Shown here one piece after another: positions 15,860 to 63,940 of a stretch of DNA of 63,940 bases (position 1 is its first letter; each line of letters starts with the position of its first letter). The notes below the pieces were generated by a model. It saw nothing but the letters and a program-made list of their open reading frames with translations, ran no database searches and was not told the DNA's origin. The translations under genes were made by a program, and so were the position numbers. Origin of the DNA: Octopus bimaculoides (taxonomy: Eukaryota); assembly GCF_001194135.2 (NCBI RefSeq), contig NC_068989.1:5299159-5363098 (forward strand), given 5' to 3'.

Positions 15860-16037
15860 GCTTGTTTCCGTCATTTGATTCCTGTCATGCTGGAGCACCG
15901 CCTTAAAGGATTTTTATCCTATCGGTTTCTTTTGCCGAACCGCTAAGTTATGGGGGCATAAACACATCAAAATCGGTTGTCAAGTGATAGCAGAGGTGGG
16001 AGTGGTGGGGGAAAACACACACGCGCACGCACACACG

Positions 16038-16081
<44 letters not shown>

Positions 16082-16243
16082 CGACGAGCTTCTTTCAGTT
16101 TCCGTCTACCAAATCCACTCACAAGGTTTTGGTCAGCCCGATGCTATAGTAGAAGACACTTGCCCAAGGTGCCATGCAATGAGACTGAACCCAGAACCAT
16201 GTGGTTGGGAAGCAAACTTCTTACCACACAACCACCCTGCGCT
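15860..16243 (-). mobile_element. SINE family A, near full length
   Basis: Reverse complement aligns by eye to 60436-60839. Confidence 0.8.
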
Positions 16244-39534: not shown

Positions 39535-39790
39535 AGGCGCACGAGTGGTAAGTAGCTTGCTTACCAACCACATGGTTCCGAGTTCAGTCCCATCTTGGGC
39601 AAGTGTCTTCTACTATAGCCTCGGGCCGACCAAAGCCTTGTGAGTGGATTTGACGGAAACTGAAAGAAGCCCGTCGTATATATGTGTAAGTATGTGTGTG
39701 TGTGTTTGTATATAATGTGTATGTATGTTTCTGTGTTTGTCCCCCTAGCATTACTTGACAACTGATGCTGGTGTGTTTATACATATTTGC
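39535..39790 (+). mobile_element. SINE family A, 3'-truncated
   Basis: Same head and body as 60436. Confidence 0.75.
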
Positions 39791-42676: not shown

Positions 42677-42825
42677 TTAACTCGTTGACAATGGCTTGCG
42701 ATATTTACACTGGATCCACACACGGTACATCTTCAATTGTCGACTTCTGTTTACTTGGAGGCGCCGGTCAATGATGTTCTGCTCTTCCACCAGGCCAGCC
42801 TGGGTGAACATCTGTCTTAGCTCAT
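42677..42825 (-). CDS. METTL2: METTL2 last coding exon 9 (149 nt): [48 protein letters not shown]
   Basis: ccctcccttttccag|AT; TAA at 42679-42677. Confidence 0.96.
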
Positions 42826-44825
42826 CTGGAAAAGGGAGGGCGAAAAAAAAAAAAATTATATATTTGAGTGTTTAATTGAGAAGGGTTTAAAACAGGATGG
42901 TAAGGTGAAGTCGGGAAGATTTAGTCATTATTTCTAGCAGCTGACCGAATGTGGTTAGCCTCTTTTCTCATGGTGTGTGTACGTGTATGTGTGTTTATGT
43001 TTGTGTGTGTGATTGAGTGAGTGTCCCTTGGTGTGTATATGTGTAAGTGAGTGTTTGTATGAGTGTGTGTGTGTGTATATGCAAGGCTGGATTCAAGTCA
43101 ACTTCAGCCCTTATCACATCCTATGTATGTATATTAATAAAATTAAATGCTGGTGCAGACAAGCAAGCCAACAAAGCACCAAAAGACATTTTTCTAGTTC
43201 TTAGTTCTTTGCCTTCTGGCTAGATGCTGCTCCCGTGAGGTTTTGACTTTCAGTTGTTTGAGAGTATAGAATCAGTTAAATGAATACCAGTTATATAATC
43301 GTAATAATGTTGGCACATTTCAATTAACCAGTTTCCCCTCTGAAAAGAAAACTGAAAAAAAATCAACCAACATTTAAATACATCATTTTATTTTTTTCTG
43401 TCTTATGGTGCTAAGGGAGATAATTGCGTGGCAACGGGAGCGCCTGTCCCTGACCGTTTGTTTCACTTGCTCCAAACAGCGTACCTTACTATGCTCTTTT
43501 AAAAAAGGATAGATATAATTTGATAAGGCAGCCCTTATTGTATGAAAGTAAGATGAGATGGTAATAGCTGTGTTACTTTGATCAGAGGTCTATTCTTTAG
43601 AAACATCAGGGACTGACCTGGTCTATACAACAACTGGTCCCTTCCTGCTATCCTGTTGTGACTTGGTAACTCAGCCTATTACTGCATTGTCCCCATACAC
43701 CTTTAAAATGAGGATGACATGTTTTGGTAATCATCATCATCATCATTTAACATCCGTTTTCCATCTGGTACAGAATGGATGGTAAGACAGGAACTGGCAA
43801 ACCAGAGAACAGAACCAAGGAGACATTTATACTAAAATGGTGACAATGTGAGGCACATGAAAACAAGCAGCCAGTTATATATACGATGGGCTTCTTTCAG
43901 TTTCTGCTTGCCAAATCCACTCACAAAGCTTTGGTCGGCCCAAGGCTTTAGTGGAAGACACTTGCCCAAAGTATGATTGTTTATTTCTAGAATGGAATTG
44001 TAGGGTAGTGTGAAAGGCTGAAGTTGGGTGGTTTGAACACAAAAAAGAGGTAGAGTATTTGGGCCGGATAAGACCAGTTTAAATGCTAAAGAGTTAAAAG
44101 AGAGATTTAGCTGCTGTTTCAATGAGAGGCTTGTAATACATGTCTATGTGTGTGTGGCCGGCATTTGCATCTGTACCATCAAGTTACTGAAAGTGAACTT
44201 ACCTTGGGTAAAGAAGTATACTCGAGTACCATCTTGGCGGACATAGAAGTTTTCTGACAAGCATCTACCTGTGGGTGGTAATGGCAAAAGGTAAGAAGAA
44301 TGACAAGGCGTTTGATTCATTGGGGACACAAAGAGACACAAGCTGTATTGGCCTTTGACTTTCCCTTGTGTAACATCGGTGGCATGGAGGGGAGAAGCTG
44401 GTATGCACGGCCTTCCATAACCAACCTTGCCTGTACTTGTGCCTCGGAGAGGAACTTTCTAGGTGCAATCCCATGGTCATTCATGACCAAAGGGGGTCAC
44501 CCAATATATATATATATATATATATATGTGTGCGTGTGTGTGTGTGTGTGTGTGAATAAAAATAAAAGAATATAAAAAAAGGGTTTTGTATGATCGTGTA
44601 TAGAGGAATATATTATTTAAAAGAGTTCCAACTCTGTTTTTTATGTTTTATTTATATTCTTATAAAATTAATGTGGGATATAGAATATGGAATATATAAT
44701 ATAAATAGTAAAATGAAATGAAGTATTGAATGTCTTATTGAATATATGAAATATTGAGTATTAAATATATAAAGGCGCTAGTATACTTTCATGCCTCATG
44801 ACATTCATCAAAGCCCTGTCTGACA

Positions 44826-44897
<72 letters not shown>

Positions 44898-47800
44898 TAG
44901 ATACATGAGGATTTCTGCATAATTCCTGTTGACCAAATTTCCTCCACTAAAAGCTATGTTTGAAGACACATAATGCCCAAGGTACCATGCAGTGAGTTTG
45001 AACATAGAACCATATGGTTTGGAAGTAAACTTCTTAACAACATAGCCACAGCATACCCGACAGCAAACACAATGGATGTAGAAATAGGCTGAAATTATGA
45101 CCTTGTGGTTCAGGAATCGATCACTTTCAACCCCAGATCAACAAACTGTGTTGTCAGGAATCCCTGAAGCAAACCCTGCTTACCTTTCTTGAATCGTAGC
45201 TGGGCCATGTCATAGCGACCGTAATCTCTGAACAGTAAAAGACCTCCTGGTTTCAAGTAACTACTTAATCTGTTCACAGTTTGTTGCATCCTGTAGGGAG
45301 AAAGAGAGAGAGAGAGAGAAGTAGAGTAAATGAAAAGACAGCATTGAAGTAAAAGAGAGGAGACGGAACATTCATTATACCATGACATTCATCATCATCA
45401 TCATTTAACATCTGTTTTCCATGCTGGCATGGGTTAGATGATTTGATTGGAACCAGTAAGCTGGAGAGCTGCACCAGGTTCAGTCTGATTTGGCTTGGTT
45501 TCTACAGCTGGATGCCCTTCCTAATGCCAACCACTCCTTGTTTTAACTCTTTTTGCACCAACAATCACCTGAGATCACACCTGGTTCTATGATGTTAATT
45601 AGTTTAAAGTGGTTGAAATTAAAGCTGTTCACCAATGTTTCATGATAATTTATGTTCCAAGCACTGGCTTAAGAATGACTTAAGTTATTTTACTAAACAC
45701 TTCATTATTTTCAAAATTAGCTAAAAGGAAAAGTAGTGTATTTTAACGGAAATATGGTAATGAAATGGTTAACCCCTCATCTCCCAGGATAAAGCTGACC
45801 TCATTCCCCCCTTGGAGTTAGTAGTCCTGCAAGTTGCATGGTGGCACGAAAAAAGCACCCAGCATGTGCTGTAAAGTGTTAGGTGTTAGGAAGGGTAACT
45901 ACCTGTTGAAACCATACCAAAGCAGACACTGGAGCATGATGCAGGCCTTGGGCCCATAGAGAAGAAGAAGAAGCTGTTGTCATCATCATCATTGTTTAAT
46001 GTCCACTTTCCATGCTGGCATGGGTTGGATGGTTTGACAAGGAACTGGCTAGCAGGGAGCTCTCCAGAATCTAACAGTCTGTTGTGGCATGGTTTCTATG
46101 GCTAGATGCTCTTCTTAACACCAACCACATAACAGAGTGTGCTGGGGGGCTTTTATCACAAGGACAAAACGTAATAGAGCAATTACTTTCATGTATGGAA
46201 GTAGGCAGGAAGAAATAGAAGAACATTTTATGATGAGTGTAAAGTGAAATGGAAGTAAAGATGGTTGTTGAGTGAAGACAAAAGTGGTTCTTACTTGTTT
46301 GGACTAATAGCATTAAGGACAAATATCATAATAATAATATCGAGGCTGTTTTCCTCAAACGGTACTGGAGAATACTCATTGGTGATGTCACATACAAATG
46401 GGTAGCAGCGTGAAGGTTCAAATTCTGGATGTTCCTGTTGAAGTGGGAAGTGATGGCAATTATTTTACTGATGGTCCAATCATTTAAGAGCATCTTTATA
46501 TATATATGTATATATATGCTATCTATCTGTTTATATATATATATAGTTAGTTATGATGGCAAAAATAAATGTCTAAAATTAGCCATCATATGATGGGTAG
46601 GGATAAATAGGAAGTCATTACGAAGGGAGAAAATTTACCAGTGTTACATGGGAGATAACTCCTAAATAAATTATTGTCGTGTAAATGAATTTGTTGTATA
46701 TTGAGTTGTAGTATAAATCAAGTATTGAATTGTGGCGTGACACAATATTGCGTAGCACAGTATATAAGAATATTCGAATGATATCGTCTTACCTTGACAA
46801 GATCAATAGCTTTGGAAGAAAAGTCACAGCAGTATATCACAAGGTTAGGGTTACTGAAATTAACAGAAATTTATAAAATTAGCTTTAATCCTTTCGTTAC
46901 CGTATTTATTTTGCGATTCTCTGTGTTTCTTTCAATTAATTTTAAATATAACAAAGAATTTAATAAAATAACTTAGTTATCATTCAGCTAGTGTTAGGAA
47001 CATAAATTGTGACTACGGTTTGGTGGAAGATTTTAATTCAAAACTTATGGGAACAAGATGTTTGTACTACAAAGCCAGAAGCGGTTTCAGCCGGGTTGGT
47101 ATCGAAAGGGTTAAATAATGGAGGAAGTGCTCACACGCATACACACACACAAACTTTGACGATCAGATATAGGCGAATCTTTTATGTCCCAACATATATT
47201 CAATGGGACTTTGGTTTATGAATGCCTCTCATAATGAAGAAATTGGTTTACAGACAATGTTTCAAAGATAAAAATGTCTTGGGTGACAAATGATGTCTTG
47301 AATAAAGAACACACAGGATAGCAATAAGCTGGGGGTATTGACAAGAAGGGTGTCAGTTTCTGCCGAGTTTCCATTCAGAGCACATCCCTGCTTCAATTCA
47401 ATGTAGCTTCTCTTGAATTTCCTATTGGAAAAATAGTTTTGGGAGACAAATGGTCTGCAGGAATGAATTAAGGTGGTAAATCAAGGTATGTCATAGATTT
47501 AGTTTCTGTGAGATATCCTGTGATCAGAGCTTAAAGATTGTGCTGTTTAACCACAGGCCGACTTTGATTGAGTTAACTACAATGATCAAAATGTTCTATT
47601 ATTACATATAATGTCATTTCAAATTTGAACTTACACTTTTCCATGCTTGCATGGAATTTATTTGAGACAGATTTTCTCCAGATGGATGCTCTTTCTGTCA
47701 CCAACCCTTACCTGTTTTCAAGCATTGACAGACGTGTTTTTGCAGAATAATATCAGAAATGAATGACATTCCTTGCATGACAATGACACTGAGTTATAAC

Positions 47801-50800
47801 TATCGCGTAATGTCAAAAAAGGGAAACACAACCCTACCACCACATATGTGTGTGTACTCTTATCCGCATCACTATTTAATGTCCCCTTTTCCATGCTGGC
47901 ATTGGTTGGATGGTTGAGCAGGAGCTGATGAGCCAGACGACTGTGTGAAGGTCCAATGTCTGTTTTAGCAGGGTTTCTACAGATTGATGCCCTTCCTAAC
48001 ACCAACCAATGAAAATAAAAGTTAGTTATTTTACCAATGCCTTTCAAATTCTCCGCTGCCACTTAACATTCACTTTCCATACTGGCATAGATTGGGGAGT
48101 TTGGCAGGAGCTGGCTAATAGGAAAGCTGCACCCAGCTCCAATTGCCTGTTTTGGCAAGGTTTCTACAGCTGGATGCCCTTCCTAATACCAACCACTTTA
48201 CAGAGTGTACTGGGCGATTTTTTTGTTGTGTTATCGGCACAAATGGCATCACCAAGTAACTCATGAGACCACTTTGCTGAGTCAGGGTGCAATATTAAGG
48301 GGCATGGCTAAAATAGGAAAAGGGGACAGAAACAGGTGTCCTGCTGTAGAGAGGTGATACATGGATAGGAAAATAAAACAATTAAAACATTAAGGATCAA
48401 TTATGAAACTTACTTGTTGGTTTTTAAGACTGGAAAAACTGTGTTGCCTGCACCACAGCCAACCTGACACAAAAAGAGAAAGAAACAGGGATCATTTGAT
48501 AGCAGAGTAAGGGGAGAAGCTACTAAAAACACACTAAGAAAATATAAAATAATCTACTATAATAATTCTCTTGTGTTTTTCTCTGTCACAACGTATCAAT
48601 GAGAAAGGAAGGGGTGATAGGTGAATAAAGAAGGAAGGGGTGATGGAAATTCTATGGTGAAAAAAAAAATCAACCTTGTGTGAGTATACTTACTTTAATT
48701 GACCCTAAAAGGATGAAAAGTACAGTTCACCTCATTGGAATTTGAACTTGGAACGTAAAGAGACAGAAGCAATGTCACTAAGCCTTTTGTCTGCTATGCA
48801 AACAATTCTGTCTGCCCGCCATCTTACATTTGACAATAATAATAGATTTAAGTTTTAGCACAGGATAGAAGGCTTGAATCAAAGCTGACTTTAAACCCTT
48901 TTTTCTTATCTCAATCTCAATTGAGAGAGATGTACAGTGACAGAGATAAAGGTTAGAGGTATGTAGGGATGGATACAGTGAGTGGCAAACAAAGATGGCA
49001 GATATGAGAAACACACAAAAGAAAAGGAAAAGGAGGAAGGATGAAGAAAGACAGTGAAACCCCCTTACTTCGAAGAATCTGTAGATTTTGTCAGGGTCGT
49101 CGTTCACCTCTTCTTCACTCACAGTCACTTGAGGTATGATGGAAGTTGTGGTATTAGTGGAAGCTTGTGATGTTTCATGTTCATTCTCAACTGGTTCCTG
49201 CTCGATGGGGCCTTCGCATTGTTGCTGCTCTGGCTGTTGCTGCTCTTCTGGCACCAGATCACACTGCTCAGAACCGGAACGGGATTTGGATTCTGGTTCC
49301 AGTTCTGGTTCAGATTCTGATTCTGATTGACTGTTCGAAGGATGGGAATTTGGTGGTTCGAGTTTCGCTTCTGGAGCTAACTCTGGAAACTCTGTGAAGA
49401 GCCAGTGCCGATCTTTGAAGAATTTATCCAGGTGTAACTGGTAAAAATGGTCCCAGAACTCATAGGCCTTGTCTTCATATTCAACTGATTAAAAAAACAG
49501 AAAAGAAAATTTTAAAACATGAAACATTCTTTTTATTCTTTTATTTGTTTCAGTCATTTGACTGCAGCCATGCTGGAGCACCACCTTTAGTCGAACAAAT
49601 CAACCCTAGGACTTATTCTTTGTAAGCCTGATACTTATTCTATCGGTCTCTTTGGCCGATATAAGTTACGGTGATGTAAATACACCAGCATCAAAATTTC
49701 CCCAAGGCACTTGATGAAGGTTGGAGGGTATATCAGTGTGTGTGTGTGTTCGTGCGTGCATGTGGGGGTGTGTTTGTCTCCCAACATCATTTGACATCAG
49801 TGTTAGTGTTTATGTCCCTGTAACTTAGTGGTTTGGCAAAAAGAGACTGATAGAATAAGTACCAGGTTTAAATTAAAAAAAAAAGTACTGGTTTCAATTG
49901 ATTTGACTAAAAGTGCTTGAAGTGGGTGCTCCAGTATGGCCACAGTCAAATGACTGAAACAAGTAATGGATAGAAGATGAAAGGATAGAGATGACTGGTG
50001 ACAAGGATCATCAAATGACTAACAAAGATATTAGTAGTAGTAATGGTGGTGGTGGTAGTAGTAGAGATGGTTTTGAAAGTGCTAGAAGAGGTAGTAGTGG
50101 TAAAGGTGATGGTGGTGGTGGTGGTGGTGGTGAAGAGGGTGGGCAGTGTATTTTGATTGGATGTTCTTCTCTCACCTTGTTTCTCAAACGACACGAGGTC
50201 AGCAGCCTGTTCTTCGGTAATACGTCGAGCTTCAGATTCTTGTGATGCATCCCAGACGACATTGTCCCTGGATGGAAGAGTGAAAAGAAAAAAAAANNNN
50301 NNNNNNNNNNNNNNNNNNNNNNNNNNNNNNTTTCATACAAAATTCCAGAATCAGCTAATAATATTTTTGAACAATTAGGCGAGATTTTATTTACATATTT
50401 TATAAATTATTCAGAGGGGATGGTCATTAGGCTTTCATTTGTAACGCTCCACCTTTGTAAGCGAGAATGAAGCAACCAATGTCCATTCTGGACATGTGCA
50501 AGGCAATCTCATGCATCATGGTTTCGTTCCTGAGCTGCTCTATATCAACTGGAGTCTGTGGAACCAAACACAATATGTGATACCGAAAAGTAAGTAAGTC
50601 CCTTGGACATCATTCTCTCAAGTCCTAGGACTTATAAGGCTGGCTACCCTGTTTCAATGGCATGTAAGCTATTGAAATCACAACCCCCCCCCCCCTTTCC
50701 TGAATGGAATGTGATCCCATCACAGGGTTCCTCATTTACAGCTGAGTGAACTGGACCAATGTAAGATGAAGTGTTTTACTCAAGAACACAACACATTGAC

Positions 50801-53372
50801 CAGTCTGGGAATTGAAACCATGATCTTGCGATCATAACTGGGTTCTAATCACTAGGCTACACATCTTCACATGATACCAAAAACAGTTCCTGAAATTAAA
50901 TCGTTTATATGAGTATAAATGAGAAGGTGTGTGGCTCAGGGGTTAGAGCACTGGGCTTACAATCATGAGGTAGTGAGTTCAATTCCTTGACCAGGCTGTG
51001 TGTTGTGTCCTTGAGCAAGACACTTTATTTCACATTGCCCCAGTTCACTCAGCTGTAGAGATGAGATGTGACATCACTGGTGCCAAGCTGTATTGGCCCC
51101 TTTGTTTTTCCCTTGAATAACATCGGTGGGGTAGAGAGGGGAGACTGGTATGCATGGGCGACTGCTGGTCTTCCATGAACAACCTTGCCTGGACTTGTGC
51201 CTCAGAGGGGAGCTTTCCAGGTGCAATCCCATGGTCAGCCATGACCGAAGAGGGGTGGGGGTGGGGTCTTTATATTTATGAGTATAAATCAGAAGAAAAA
51301 ATATGGTAGGTAGGTAGGATGGAGCTGGGGTCATACCAGATTAGTGGTCCCAGAGGCATCCTCATGTGTTGAGCCAACCAGTGCTCTCCATTGCTGGCAG
51401 TCCCATGTCAGTCCCTCTACATCTTCCAAGGTGATGTTGAGCCCCTGGAGAATTTCCCCAACCATGTCCAGCCATTTGGTGTGGGGCCTGTCATGAGACC
51501 TCTTCCAGCCCACAGCTGTTATATTAAATTTAAATGAGAGTAAAGCCCTGGCAGGATGATCTAGTGAGTGACGGAGGAAATGGCCGTACTAGCGTATGCA
51601 ATGGACAGCTATGAGGCGGGAAGCTGTGGGCTGATCCATGCTCGCATGCAGTTCTTTACTAGAAATGTGATGGTAGCATCCAATGTTCTTGGTGGTTTTC
51701 AGGGCTCTGCTATTGAAAGTGTTGATCCTCTTAGCAAGGGTCTTCAATGGGGGCCACATTTCTGCTCCATAGAGGAGAATGGAGGAAAACTACAAACAAA
51801 GGATATGTATATTAGCATGCAGTAAGAAGGGTTTCACACCAAACCCAATTACTAGTCTATATTTTCTTCCCACTCCGACCACACCAGGCCTGGCCAACTC
51901 GAATTACATTGCGGGCCACTTTAATCACAGAAATTCTTTTGAGCGCCACTTGTATACTTTATGCACTAACAGTCAAAAGGTGGAGGTGCAATGACCCAGT
52001 GGTTAGGGCAGAAGAGTCGCGGTCATAAGATCATGGTTTCAATTCCCAGACTGGGCGTTGTGAGTGTTTATTGAGTGAAAACACCTAAAGCTCCAAAAGG
52101 CTCCAGTAGGGGGTGGTGGTGAACCCTGCTGTACTCTTTCACCACAACTTTCACTTACTCTTTCTTCCTGTTTCTGTTGTACCTGTATTTTAAAGGGGCC
52201 AGCCTTGTCACACTCTGTGACATGCTGAATCTCCCCGAGAACTACGTTAAGGGTACACGTGTCTGTGGATACTGCTCCCCTTCATCTGATAAGCTATAAA
52301 AAAAATTAGGGATGGAAAAACAGATAGAGAGAGAGAGAGGGAGGAAGAGAAAGAGAGTGATGGAGAGAAATTAGAAGAATGTTAGGGAGTAAAGATAGCA
52401 ACAATGTGAAGGGAAGAGAAAGAGAGAATGGAAAATGCAATGAAAGGGAGCAAGAAGGATAAAAGGGAGGAAATAAAGAAAGAGTGGAAACACCCTTACC
52501 AATTATTGTGTCTAAATACTTTATTAGGATCAGTGAGAGGCCTAGCCCCACCCCTGGGACGTTGCTGAGATGTAGAGCGTGATGAGCAATGCAAAATTTG
52601 TGGGACAGAGCGGTATATATGATACTGAAAGGACATCACGTGTCGATTCAGTAGGCTGAGTGTAACTCCAGAGACAGAACGAGATGCCATTTCTTCTGAA
52701 ATATACAGATAAAAGACTTTTGTTGTTAGAATTAAATGGAAGTATAGAATGAAGGGATCCTATTGTCAAACAATGCTAATCCTATTTGGGAAGTCTGCTT
52801 AAGATAGACGAGGCGGCCCCTGTTTGTGGCTGTGGCCAGTTTTACCCGACATACAGTTTCCCCAATATCAACAGTGACAGTGTCAACAGGGAATGGCTGA
52901 TTTGGTCCATATCATGGGCTGCAGTGAAAATAAATGTTCTGAAAACCAATATCAAACAATTATAATAATCTAAAATCTTTGCCCCTGCATCTGTATCATC
53001 ATCATCGTCATCATGATCACCATCAGCGCCGCCGCCGCCGCCACCACCACCACCACTTTTCATGCTTGCATGAGGTGGATTTTCTACATCGACTAAAGAA
53101 TTCTTCAAGGCGGTGCCCCAGCATGGCTGCAGTCTAATGACTGAAATAAGTAAAAAGATAATATATATATATATATATACATACATATATATATATGAAG
53201 TGAGTTATAGAGCTTGTTGAACCATGTCAAATCGTCCAACCCATGTCAGCATGGAAAACAGACGTTAAATGATGATCTTTTACCATTTACGATTTGCACG
53301 TGTACCTCGATGTTTTGCAGTGAATCGGAAAATACGAAGATGTTTAGAAAATCTTCGGTTTTCTCTTTTACA

Positions 53373-54872: not shown

Positions 54873-55383
54873 GCTATTTTTAGCAGATCGAGTGACTATG
54901 TAGGGGCTCCCACGTTGGCTCGTTAGTAAATTAATGCAGCTGACAGTGGCGGTGGTGGTGGTGATGATGATCTTGTCGAAGCTTTGGTTGTGGGTCGATT
55001 ATGATAATTGTAGTAATGATAATAGCATAAGCACGAAGACGACTATGTTGATGATGATAGTGATGATGACGTTGACGAGGAGAAGAAAGAGGATATTGGT
55101 GCTGATAATGAGGGAGGGAGGGAAAATACTGTTCGGTGTCATTAAAGAGATGAGGAATTCCAAGAGCGAGAGGAATCGAATCGAATCGAAGCTCCATATT
55201 GCCTGTCAATGCTTAAACAGAAGACTGTGAAGAGAGAAGGCAAAGCAACGACGTTACTACTCACCAAGCGTTGTGCTGGAACACGTTACTGGAATCTGTT
55301 AAATGGCGATTACCGAAAGCAGACCGTTTCTGAGAAGCATCGTTGCTGGAATTGGAACAAGTTCCTTCTGCAACATCAGACAT
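42677..55383 (-). CDS. METTL2: tRNA N3-methylcytidine (m3C32) methyltransferase, METTL2/METTL8/Trm140 family; 9 coding exons, 1200 nt incl. stop, 399 aa (exon 1a isoform)
   Basis: Exons 55383-55265, 50267-50176, 49484-49069, 48463-48414, 46853-46793, 46434-46295, 45290-45184, 44268-44203 and 42825-42677 all have GT/AG junctions and join in frame. Family motifs: [37 protein letters not shown] (SAM motif I), [60 protein letters not shown]. Confidence 0.97.
44203..44268 (-). CDS. METTL2: METTL2 exon 8 (66 nt): (G)[21 protein letters not shown](D)
   Basis: taccacccacag|GT ... CAA G|gtaagt. Confidence 0.97.
45184..45290 (-). CDS. METTL2: METTL2 exon 7 (107 nt): [35 protein letters not shown](G)
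   Basis: ctccctacag|G ... AAA G|gtaagc. Confidence 0.97.
45390..45545. repeat. Interspersed repeat family E (catcatcat..TTTAACATC..TTTCCATGCTGGCATGGGTT..TTTCTACAGCTGGATGCCCTTCCTAA)
   Basis: Copies near 43735, 45830 (reversed), 45980, 47630, 47870, 48060 and 53215 (reversed). Confidence 0.75.
46295..46434 (-). CDS. METTL2: METTL2 exon 6 (140 nt): [46 protein letters not shown](K)
   Basis: cccacttcaacag|GAA ... AAC AA|gtaaga. Confidence 0.96.
46793..46853 (-). CDS. METTL2: METTL2 exon 5 (61 nt): (N)[20 protein letters not shown]
   Basis: ctgttaatttcag|T ... GTC AAG|gtaaga; CCDFS motif. Confidence 0.96.
48414..48463 (-). CDS. METTL2: METTL2 exon 4 (50 nt): [16 protein letters not shown]
   Basis: ctttttgtgtcag|GTT ... 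AAC AA|gtaagt; SAM-binding glycine motif. Confidence 0.96.
49069..49484 (-). CDS. METTL2: METTL2 exon 3 (416 nt): [35 protein letters not shown], acidic linker, [11 protein letters not shown]
   Basis: ttttttaatcag|TT ... TTC GAA|gtaagg; open across 138 codons; conserved [15 protein letters not shown]. Confidence 0.96.
50176..50267 (-). CDS. METTL2: METTL2 exon 2 (92 nt): (W)[30 protein letters not shown](V)
   Basis: ctcttccatccag|G ... CAA G|gtgaga; phases 2 and 1. Confidence 0.95.
50921..51276 (+). mobile_element. SINE (head C2 + tail Y) with a 13-bp target-site duplication
   Basis: TATGAGTATAAAT at 50908-50920 and 51277-51289; related copies at 31088-31395 and, tail only, 44330-44500. Confidence 0.85.
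51331..51790 (-). mobile_element. Degenerate RTE-like LINE remnant in METTL2 intron 1
   Basis: [26 protein letters not shown]...[15 protein letters not shown] followed by [17 protein letters not shown]...[14 protein letters not shown]. Confidence 0.8.
51980..52269 (+). mobile_element. SINE family C copy in METTL2 intron 1, CpG-decayed
   Basis: Collinear with 41750-42040 with many CG to TG/CA changes. Confidence 0.85.
52500..52695 (-). CDS. METTL2: Alternative first coding exon 1b with putative mitochondrial targeting presequence: [63 protein letters not shown](W); would give a 423-aa isoform
   Basis: Acceptor ttttatctgtatatttcag|AAGAA ATG (ATG at 52690); donor AAT TG|gtaagg in the same phase 2 as exon 1a. 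The last ~20 codons are paralogous to exon 1a (LTDxxxVFxHNxW). No Asp/Glu in the first 53 residues; 7 Arg in the first 50. Confidence 0.85.
55265..55383 (-). CDS. METTL2: METTL2 coding exon 1a (119 nt): [39 protein letters not shown](W)
   Basis: ATG at 55383; ends GCT TG|gtgagt, phase 2; joins exon 2 to give HNAW-DNV. Confidence 0.93.
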
Positions 55384-60435: not shown

Positions 60436-60839
60436 AGGCGTAGGAGTGGCAGTGTGGTAAGTAGCTTGCTTACGAACCACAAGGTTCCGGGTTCAGTCCA
60501 ACTGCTTGGCACCTTGGGCAAGTGTCTTCTACTATAGCCTCGGGCTGACCAAAGCCTTGTGAGTGGATTTGCTAGATAGAAACTGAAAGAAGCCCGTCGT
60601 ATATTTGTATGTATATATGTATGTGTGTGTATATGTTTGTGTGTCTGTGTTTGTTCCCAACAACATCGCTTGACAGCCGATGTTGGTGTGTTTACGTCCC
60701 CGTAACTTAGCGCTTCGGCATAATAGACCGATAGAATAAGTACTAGGCTTACAAAGAATAAGTCCCGGGGTCGATTTGCTCGACTAAAGCCGGGGCTCCA
60801 GCATGGCCGCAGTAAAATGACTGAAACAAGTAAAAGAGA
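60436..60839 (+). mobile_element. Full-length tRNA-derived SINE, family A (has an internal TA/TG microsatellite)
   Basis: Head aggcgtaggagtggcagtgtggtaag..ggttccgggttcagtcc (A/B-box-like); tail GCATGGCCGCAGT..TGACTGAAACAAGTAAAAGA. More than 15 whole or partial copies in the window. Confidence 0.85.
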
Positions 60840-62627: not shown

Positions 62628-63940
62628 NNNNNNNNNNNNNNNNNNNNNNNNNNNNNNNNNNNNNNNNNNNNNNNNNNNNNNNNNNNNNNNNNNNNNNNNN
62701 NNNNNNNNNNNNNNNNNNNNNNNNNNNGCACGCATGCACATTCAATCTCTCTTTCTTTCTCTCTTTCACTCACTCTCTCTCACTCTCTCTCTCTCACACA
62801 CACATACATACACACACAAATTTGTATGGATTTGTACGTACATAAATATGTAACATCCCCCCCCCATTTGTTCACTTCAATCTTTATTTGATTTGCTGTA
62901 GAGGGGAAAAAATGAAGAATAAAATAATAGCTTGAAACACTTCTGGTCATTCGGTAAGAGCTAACAAAAAGGAATTGATTTCAGACGATCAGATTAAAGA
63001 ACAATCAGTAGCCAGCAAGGCACAAAATCTTAGCGAAAGCCAAAAGCGAAGTCGAAGTTTTATCATCGGAAGTTATGCGACGCCATTAAAAAGCAGACGA
63101 TAAAATACTATACTTCCATTCTGGCTTTTCTTAAAGTTATTTCATCGACTGCAGATATTTTTGTCAATATGAATAACACAAACAGTATTGATATCTAAAG
63201 TAGGAAGAAGAAATCAGATTTATAGAGATGAGAAAATTAGACATTCTAAGTTTAAGTCACAAGAGATTGTAGGTAAAGTTAACAATGGGAAGGACTTTTG
63301 TATAACAGAATCAACCATTATTTCTATGCTACGTTTAATATATATATATTTCTGAAATGCATGTATATGCGTACGTATATACATACGTACGTACATACAT
63401 ACCTACATACATAGATGCATACATACATACAAACGCACGCATATACATACATATATATATATATACACATTTACGTGTGTATGTGTTCTTTTATTCATTT
63501 ACTTGTTTCAGTCATTTGACTGCGGCCATGCTGGAGCACCGCCTTTAGTCCAACAAACTGACACCATGACTTATTCTTTGTAAGCCTAGTACTTATTCTA
63601 TTGGTCTGTTTTGTCGAGCCTCTAATAAGTGTGTCTTATATACCATAAAAAAACGGTATATGAAAACTAGTCGATGGCACTGCTCTTGTCTTAGGAATGG
63701 TACATGTAATTGGTCCTCCGATTAACTAACACTAAGTTGTTTCTGAATATCTTTTGCGGAATCCATTCTGTTGCAAGTTATATTCTCGGGTCCTTACTCT
63801 GAGGATATAACTATAACTTTCTCCTTCCAGTGTGTGTCACCCGGGTCAGCCTTTGAGTTTTCTGCCGATAATATCATCCACACCTGACCAATACTGCGCA
63901 TATAGGGTAATACAGCGGACTGAAAAGTGACACCCTTATA

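Follow-up and report, generated by a model that had tools for sequence, protein, structure and literature searches.

Introduction

Can one invertebrate gene supply the writer of 3-methylcytidine at tRNA position 32 (m3C32) to both the cytosol and the mitochondria? The question is raised by a METTL2-type gene of Octopus bimaculoides, whose first intron contains an additional coding exon. The gene lies on the minus strand of a 63,940-nucleotide stretch of contig NC_068989.1 (positions 5,299,159 to 5,363,098); this whole stretch is called the window here, and coordinates refer to it. Reports of METTL8 are confined to chordates or vertebrates (PMC8662637, PMC8980813). The papers on METTL8 let the mitochondrial m3C32 writer arise in vertebrates and are silent on how, or whether, invertebrate mitochondria obtain the modification.

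An earlier note on this DNA described the additional exon as a hidden duplicate first exon and proposed that this animal achieves dual targeting with tandem alternative first exons. We arrive at a different architecture of the 5' end. The segment 52695–52500 is probably an alternatively included cassette exon of a single octopus METTL2-type tRNA m3C32 methyltransferase gene, and isoform X1, which contains it, is likely the mitochondrial form of the enzyme.

One METTL2-type gene with two N-termini

The gene was rebuilt by hand from open frames and splice sites and comprises ten exons (Table 1). Exon 1a or the cassette can be joined to exon 2; both joins create the Trp codon TGG in the same phase, and the frame stays open through the common exons to a stop codon within the last exon (42825–42677). 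The spliced products have 399 residues when started in exon 1a and 423 residues when started in the cassette. They agree letter for letter with the O. bimaculoides RefSeq isoforms X2 (XP_014788428.1) and X1 (XP_014788427.1), respectively. Without the cassette, the product of exon 1a is the start of the cytosolic-type isoform X2, while with the cassette included exon 1a becomes a 39-codon upstream open reading frame (ORF). The exon is hence not hidden: both it and its isoform are already in RefSeq.

The best match of the 423-residue product is METTL2 isoform X1 of Octopus sinensis (97% identity, 100% coverage), and X1 and X2 of O. bimaculoides fall in the same 90% cluster as this protein. No separate METTL8-like octopus gene was found among the best 120 hits, which hold one METTL2/8-type octopus protein cluster, although a more diverged paralogue could rank below them; the body of X1 is shared with X2. 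The expectation that octopus has no separate METTL8 locus holds within these hits and no further.

By family, the gene is a METTL2-type tRNA m3C32 methyltransferase with predicted methylation activity. Its best database matches are named METTL2, and both isoforms lie above the cut-offs of the Pfam families Methyltransf_12, _23, _25, _11 and _31, which indicates an S-adenosylmethionine (SAM)-dependent Rossmann methyltransferase core. Residues 226–420 of X1 align to METTL6 structures (E = 1.6e-56). The elements FWDHFY and FFKDRHW, encoded in exon 3, also align to METTL6 and are invariant in an alignment of 24 sequences; FWDxFY and FFKDRHW elements have been assigned to the m3C-specific RNA-binding domain (PMC11479938). 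METTL6 does not carry the METTL2/8 N-terminal motif, and no METTL2 or METTL8 structure was present in the copy of the PDB that we searched. The AlphaFold2 model of X1 has a confident core. Its predicted local distance difference test score (pLDDT) is below 50 for the leader (residues 1–49) and for an insert (residues 137–225) and about 60 for the N-terminal motif, so the model gives no structural insight into the alternative N-terminus. The insert is encoded by exon 3 (49069–49484; X1 residues ~137–225) and forms a long acidic low-complexity segment rich in Ser, Glu, Pro and Gln. It sits between the FFKDRHW element and the methyltransferase core with pLDDT <50, and its length and sequence differ greatly among species.

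The cassette encodes a presequence-like leader and a second copy of the family motif

The exon proposed at 52500–52695 was confirmed in all its parts, with an AG acceptor, an ATG, 63 open codons plus TG that end at 52500, and a GTAAGG donor in the phase of exon 1a. With splice boundaries marked by a slash, the acceptor reads ...ctgtatatttcag/AAGAAATGG, or shorter tatatttcag/AAGAAATGG, where 52695 is the first base of the exon and the AG lies 5 nt upstream of the ATG. It had been described as strong. The acceptor is real and nearly the same in O. sinensis, with one substitution, but its polypyrimidine tract is the weakest of the internal exons (0.64 vs 0.68–0.95).

The METTL2/8 N-terminal motif is taken here as G-x-R-x-L-x-D-x3-V-F-x2-N-x-W-D. 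The earlier note was right to see a second copy of it in the cassette. The peptides of exon 1a and of the cassette (called 1b in that note) are identical at 15 of 29 positions (E = 5e-9), and a loose regular expression for the motif, applied to the six-frame translation of the window, matches solely exon 1a and the cassette, with 0 matches in 100 shuffles. Ahead of this copy, about 45 residues free of Asp and Glu had been noted. We count 43 residues with 0 Asp/Glu, 4 Arg, a net charge of +4 and a maximal helical hydrophobic moment of 0.70. The leader of exon 1a is indeed short and acidic, with 3 acidic and 2 basic residues among 20.

In a crude composition test, the cassette leader has what is expected of a presequence: it is N-terminal, 20–60 residues long and positive, contains few or no acidic residues and has amphipathic potential. 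Among the leaders tabulated, those of the 1b type have 30–66 residues (66 in Mytilus), a net charge of +4 to +9, 0–4 acidic residues and hydrophobic moments of 0.5–0.84; those of the 1a type have 13–20 residues and a net charge of -1 to -3. METTL8-type leaders, with 28–34 residues and +4 to +8, group with the 1b type by composition. As far as sequence composition can tell, the cassette probably gives octopus METTL2 a mitochondrial version.

In relatives, the cassette is spliced after exon 1a

In a second, squid-like cephalopod (71% identical protein), the complete 1a frame leads straight into the cassette homologue in two RNA-seq contigs that were assembled independently. The frame MAEQEE...RPQFGNRTLTDPNNVFQHNA is followed by ...AAT GCT TG/A AAT GGC C..., and since the contigs do not contain the 1a donor GT at the join, it represents a splice junction. 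An assembled transcript of crayfish shows the same layout, with the cassette homologue directly after exon 1a. RefSeq X1 of Procambarus starts with MYLNIMPDL..., the +1 frame of the last exon 1a codons. RefSeq X1 of Eriocheir (MYSSTMR/EVHHLSS...) is possible solely via a splice from exon 1a to ttttgcag/AGGTGCAT (genomic acceptor ttttgcag/AGGTGC). Decapods thus have the leader-frame start codon within exon 1a. Transcripts L001, L002 and L003 together with RefSeq X1 of Procambarus and Eriocheir place the segment between exon 1 and exon 2 of the mature mRNA, at odds with the proposed tandem first exons. Splicing after exon 1a in relatives explains the acceptor seen in octopus. For the octopus itself we infer from this homology that the cassette is probably spliced after exon 1a and is probably not an alternative first exon. 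A query with 110 residues of the N-terminus, aimed at a direct octopus transcript, gave no match.

The arrangement had been attributed to this animal; it is in fact widespread in bilaterian invertebrates. The proposed search for exon 1b in other molluscs and bilaterians yielded homologues of cassette-type design in bivalves, decapods, insects and amphioxus, all with an open frame. In Branchiostoma lanceolatum, exon 1a is followed by an intron of ~540 nt, the acceptor ccattgcag/ACGTG...ATG and a 1b-type exon (L007 10002–10803). This cassette has 168 nt, and its leader frame is the same as the 1a frame, parted from it solely by the junction TGA. The amphioxus leader frame therein differs from the +1 shift of cephalopods and decapods, and its motif scores 1a-like; the amphioxus cassette may be an independent duplication.

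In Haliotis, exons 1a and 1b lie ~330 nt apart. A bivalve-like genomic contig holds a cassette with a good acceptor and no in-frame ATG, so that the start must be upstream. The start of Mytilus X2, MCLNTMH, would correspond to the +1 frame of the NVFEHNAW codons, as judged from the peptide. In an AT-rich arthropod-like transcript (L008 1–320), the 1b segment follows exon 1a without an intron and a downstream donor is used; the 1a frame reads TGG TAA TAA. The start of the leader frame MKMMFSSIMHGNK... again falls within exon 1a, in its +1 frame. Judged from its peptide, Plodia interpunctella Mettl2 X4 (N-terminus ...SSNIMRG...) looks like the same arrangement without an intron. In the Trypoxylus dichotomus model GJQ73352.1, both motif copies stand in one frame without a leader (...VFEHNAW KKPMHGSRYLVNKNRVFEFNAW DDVEWD...); either the model is mis-joined or both motif copies would be translated together.

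A 59-column profile of the 1b N-terminus found only short exon-2 ORFs in a word-indexed database. Against representatives at 50% identity, it returned mostly 1a-type sequences, along with leads in Plodia, a beetle, L008 and L009. METTL2 models of two bivalves (oyster, Dreissena), two caenogastropods (Batillaria, Nucella), a nemertean (Tubulanus), an annelid (Owenia) and a sea cucumber (Holothuria) carry an in-frame basic extension ahead of an internal Met at the usual start. These models suggest dual targeting by two in-frame starts instead of a duplicated exon, and would support a role of METTL2 in both compartments among invertebrates more generally.

The junction closes the upstream frame next to the leader start

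Junctions were examined in both octopuses, a squid-like species, crab, crayfish, amphioxus and the bivalve-like locus (n = 7). In six of them, the 1a ORF of 30–40 codons closes at a TGA composed of TG and the A that begins the cassette; at the bivalve-like locus, the junction reads TG/T and the stop comes eight codons further on. The leader frame has its first AUG between 22 nt before and 19 nt after the junction. In octopus, the cassette of 196 nt shifts the frame by +1, and the leader ATG follows 4 nt (AGAA) after the junction TGA. A 30–40 codon upstream ORF that ends near the next start is a geometry that fits leaky scanning or reinitiation. Stop readthrough or frameshifting that would fuse 1a and 1b was considered and rejected: the leader would be buried internally, and the frames differ in most species.

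We propose that a splicing switch is coupled to the choice of the translation start. Skipping of the cassette, with exon 1a joined to exon 2, would give the short acidic cytosolic-type X2. Upon inclusion, the 1a frame would run into the TGA that the junction creates, and a new frame would open at the ATG 4 nt later. This frame would encode the 43-residue presequence-like leader and the cassette's own diverged copy of the N-terminal motif and join exon 2 in phase, giving X1. X1 would most likely be imported into mitochondria and do the job of vertebrate METTL8 as a putative writer of m3C32 on mitochondrial tRNAs. The inclusion mRNA would retain the 1a start codon, so the leader frame needs a route of its own: ribosomes could pass over the 1a AUG by leaky scanning or reinitiate once the 39-codon ORF has ended, or transcription could begin downstream of that AUG.

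Constraint on the cassette frame and alternative explanations

The frame of the cassette is protein-coding, because the motif is constrained and the frame is conserved across clades. Between octopus and the squid-like species, synonymous (pS) and nonsynonymous (pN) divergence are 0.77 and 0.16 for the 1b motif and 0.83 and 0.21 for the 1a motif, so 1b is as constrained as 1a. The arthropod-1b profile beats the 1a profile by 4–18 bits on mollusc 1b motifs, and the mollusc-1b profile is better by 5–14 bits on crustacean 1b motifs; two insect sequences are without this cross-clade excess. The shared signature, RPxGGxRxLxDxxxVFxxNNW, argues for a single origin of 1b before the mollusc/arthropod split.

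Several observations weigh against a cassette that is included in octopus and translated into a mitochondrial enzyme. Between O. bimaculoides and O. sinensis, it shows 8 nonsynonymous changes and 1 synonymous change (omega 2.6; p = 0.32, not significant), although nine changes are too few for the ratio of the two octopuses to be informative, and its conservation does not exceed that of the adjoining upstream intron sequence. The 1a AUGs have A at -3 in 6/6 and G at +4 in 3/6, a good context in which they look non-leaky, and in octopus two more out-of-frame AUGs lie upstream of the cassette. Messages with an early stop, such as the inclusion mRNA, are typically targeted by nonsense-mediated mRNA decay (NMD). 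The octopus junction between exon 1a and the cassette rests on homology, the conserved acceptor and the RefSeq model, and a start within intron 1 would be compatible with these.

Such a start would make the cassette an alternative first exon in the proper sense, driven by a promoter of its own within intron 1, and two promoters would make the two isoforms. The 287 nt upstream of the cassette (52696–52981) are 95.1% identical between the two octopuses (p = 0.001), compared with 89.6% just downstream of the cassette and ~90% in other intron blocks; this stretch fits regulated splicing and could also be a promoter. The octopus cassette further has its own well-placed ATG, and upstream of the Haliotis 1b ATG only weak acceptor candidates are found. 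A first exon, however, needs no acceptor, yet both octopuses retain the tttcag 5 nt ahead of the ATG. The cassette homologue is spliced after exon 1a in the transcripts of another cephalopod, and in decapods and the bivalve-like locus the cassette has no usable start, coding there beginning in exon 1a. We regard a second promoter as unlikely. If the cassette is spliced in, it might instead act as a poison exon, whose junction TGA tunes METTL2 levels through NMD while the downstream frame is not usefully translated. The TGA indeed lies far upstream of many exon junctions, the 1a AUGs stand in a good context, and the comparison between the octopuses gives no excess of synonymous change. Yet the stop is introduced in the 1a frame; what joins exon 2 is a conserved and constrained coding frame, open and in phase in molluscs, crustaceans, insects and amphioxus. 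The motif constraint between cephalopods, the derived residues shared by mollusc and crustacean copies and a leader that keeps its presequence composition while its sequence diverges make a purely regulatory exon very improbable.

The isoform could also be made with an N-terminus that serves another role, be it the choice of substrate or cofactor in the cytosol or delivery to another compartment, much as some METTL8 splice forms are nucleolar. The motif itself, beyond the leader, differs consistently between 1a and 1b, and specificity signals have been proposed for the N-termini of METTL2 and METTL8 (PMC11479938). The isoforms of human METTL8 are not all found in the same place (PMC9023283). 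The long, acid-free, Arg-rich leader with amphipathic potential nevertheless matches METTL8-type presequences, and in other invertebrate lineages an internal Met is preceded, in frame, by a comparable basic extension, as is classic for dual targeting. A role other than mitochondrial targeting appears quite improbable to us, while the diverged 1b motif may matter beyond targeting if the N-termini do carry specificity signals. A single gene serving both compartments is the best reading, because a conserved coding exon with a presequence-like leader meets one octopus cluster among the best 120 hits and a METTL8 described from chordates or vertebrates only.

Relation to METTL8 and the ancestral state

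The METTL8 motif had been described in the earlier note as closer to exon 1b, which the profile scores do not support. Expressed as the 1b profile minus the 1a profile in bits, with low power given the short motif, vertebrate METTL8 scores -2.5 to -6.6 and is slightly nearer to the 1a type. Amphioxus 1b scores about -10, METTL2 -13 to -20 and protostome 1b +12 to +47. A pairwise count by eye for octopus only, 12 vs 10 of 20 positions shared with the METTL8 motif, does not discriminate. With this short motif, the profile scores do not place the cassette with METTL8 and apart from METTL2-type sequences. Descent of the METTL8 first coding exon or of the amphioxus cassette from the protostome cassette does not follow from the data; independent duplication, conversion between copies or plain divergence could each account for the METTL8 and amphioxus motifs.

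An ancestral gene with dual targeting that was partitioned at a later stage would be a reasonable inference, not a result. In its full form, the scenario is tentative and rather doubtful: the bilaterian ancestor might have had a single METTL2/8 gene that served both compartments through a two-frame 5' end, with the mitochondrial frame reached by leaky scanning or stop-coupled reinitiation. Exon 1a would have been the cytosolic start and, whenever the duplicated exon was spliced in or read into, an upstream ORF closed at the junction. The second frame would often take its AUGs from the conserved NVFEHNAW codons, where they lie hidden in the +1 reading, and the 1b motif might be tuned to mitochondrial tRNAs or to mitochondrial seryl-tRNA synthetase (SerRS). 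This layout would have been kept for >500 million years in molluscs, arthropods and cephalochordates and split in vertebrates into METTL2 and METTL8.

Gene layout and other features of the window

The coordinates of the gene and of further features are collected in Table 1. A 34-N assembly gap at 50297–50330 lies 30 nt upstream of exon 2. The window contains interspersed repeat families with three to six copies each, some within METTL2 introns, as well as many microsatellites and 18 N runs. No tRNA genes were found in the window, and no other clear coding exons were seen in it outside the METTL2 gene. In Eriocheir sinensis (L006 4709–9047), METTL2 is directly preceded on its strand by a gene for a class I aminoacyl-tRNA synthetase with the Pfam domains tRNA-synt_1c and Anticodon_2; the two form a pair of tRNA-related genes in this crab.

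Table 1. Positions of the METTL2-type gene parts and of repeats in the window
Feature	Position	Strand	Remarks
Exon 1a, coding part	55265..55383	-	ATG 55383; 39 residues + TG of Trp; last base 55265; donor TG/gtgagt
Cassette 3' splice site	52696..52725	-	polypyrimidine-rich stretch + AG: caacaaaagtcttttatctgtatatttcag
Cassette exon (1b)	52500..52695	-	196 nt; between exon 1a and exon 2
Leader-frame ATG	52688..52690	-	context gaagaaATGg; G at -3, G at +4
Presequence-like leader, residues 2-43	52562..52687	-	assigned by composition
Second copy of METTL2/8 N-terminal motif	52500..52561	-	20 residues + TG of Trp
Cassette donor GT	52498..52499	-	TG/gtaagg; phase as exon 1a donor
Common exon 2	50176..50267	-	31 residues; first base 50267; accepts exon 1a or cassette
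Common exons 3-9	42677..49484	-	FWDHFY and FFKDRHW elements, acidic low-complexity insert, SAM methyltransferase core
Common exons 3-9, single coordinates	49484-49069, 48463-48414, 46853-46793, 46434-46295, 45290-45184, 44268-44203, 42825-42677	-	
Interspersed repeats, examples	16031-16226, 39545-39727, 49534-49658, 60454-60836, 63486-63616		

Comparison with known systems

A full-text literature search found no published account of an invertebrate mitochondrial METTL2 isoform, of the cassette or of the junction stop, and a paper on Aplysia tRNA modifications contained nothing on m3C32 of mitochondrial tRNAs. A conserved presequence-bearing METTL2 isoform would, if true, give a concrete and testable answer to the question of m3C32 in invertebrate mitochondria, and METTL2/METTL8 would be a clean case in which two paralogues came to share out the work of an alternatively spliced dual-location gene. 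How ribosomes get to a second frame behind a stop made at a junction is another question to which this layout lends itself; in several lineages, the start codon sits in an overlapping frame of exon 1a. This value is tempered by an isoform that is already annotated and whose function is so far a prediction.

The cytosolic m3C32 writers METTL2A/B and yeast Trm140 are orthologous to the octopus gene by best matches and domains, and exon 1a carries a motif of their RPQFGNRxLTDxxNVFxHNAW type; a mitochondrial METTL2 isoform was not described in the literature searched. For the start of the leader frame, a parallel is termination-reinitiation, where a short upstream ORF that ends near the next start can allow a restart. 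Similar to this, the upstream frame of 30–40 codons ends within a few nt of the next start or overlaps it; a dedicated element that would promote a restart did not come to light, no search having been aimed at one.

Vertebrate METTL8 belongs to the same family and is mitochondrial through a presequence, Met1–Gln22 in human, with alternative splicing at the 5' end setting the isoforms (PMC9023283). Presequence and motif follow each other as in the cassette, with a similar leader and a motif of the same type (APLGSRILTDP.KVFEHNMW in database METTL8-like proteins). In contrast to the octopus isoform, which shares its catalytic body with the cytosolic one, METTL8 is a separate gene described only from chordates or vertebrates (PMC8662637, PMC8980813). 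Its motif is no closer to protostome 1b than to 1a, and common descent of the exons would be conjecture.

Systems with two in-frame AUGs, such as GARS1 with its two start codons (PMC8123711) and yeast Pif1 with documented leaky scanning (PMC11229318), yield forms with and without a presequence from a single gene or mRNA. The METTL2 models of oyster, Dreissena, caenogastropods, nemertean, annelid and sea cucumber match this layout. In octopus, the starts lie in different frames and exons, and the choice between them would also depend on splicing.

The closest known mechanism is that of human KARS1, in which the cytosolic enzyme results when exon 1 is joined to exon 3, while retention of exon 2 provides the signal of the mitochondrial enzyme, so that the N-termini differ (PMC8251883, PMC8123711). 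There, one gene serves both compartments and a cassette switches the N-terminus. METTL2 differs in that its cassette also carries a duplicated functional motif, that a stop at the junction or close to it closes the upstream frame, and that the start overlaps exon 1a in another frame in several lineages.

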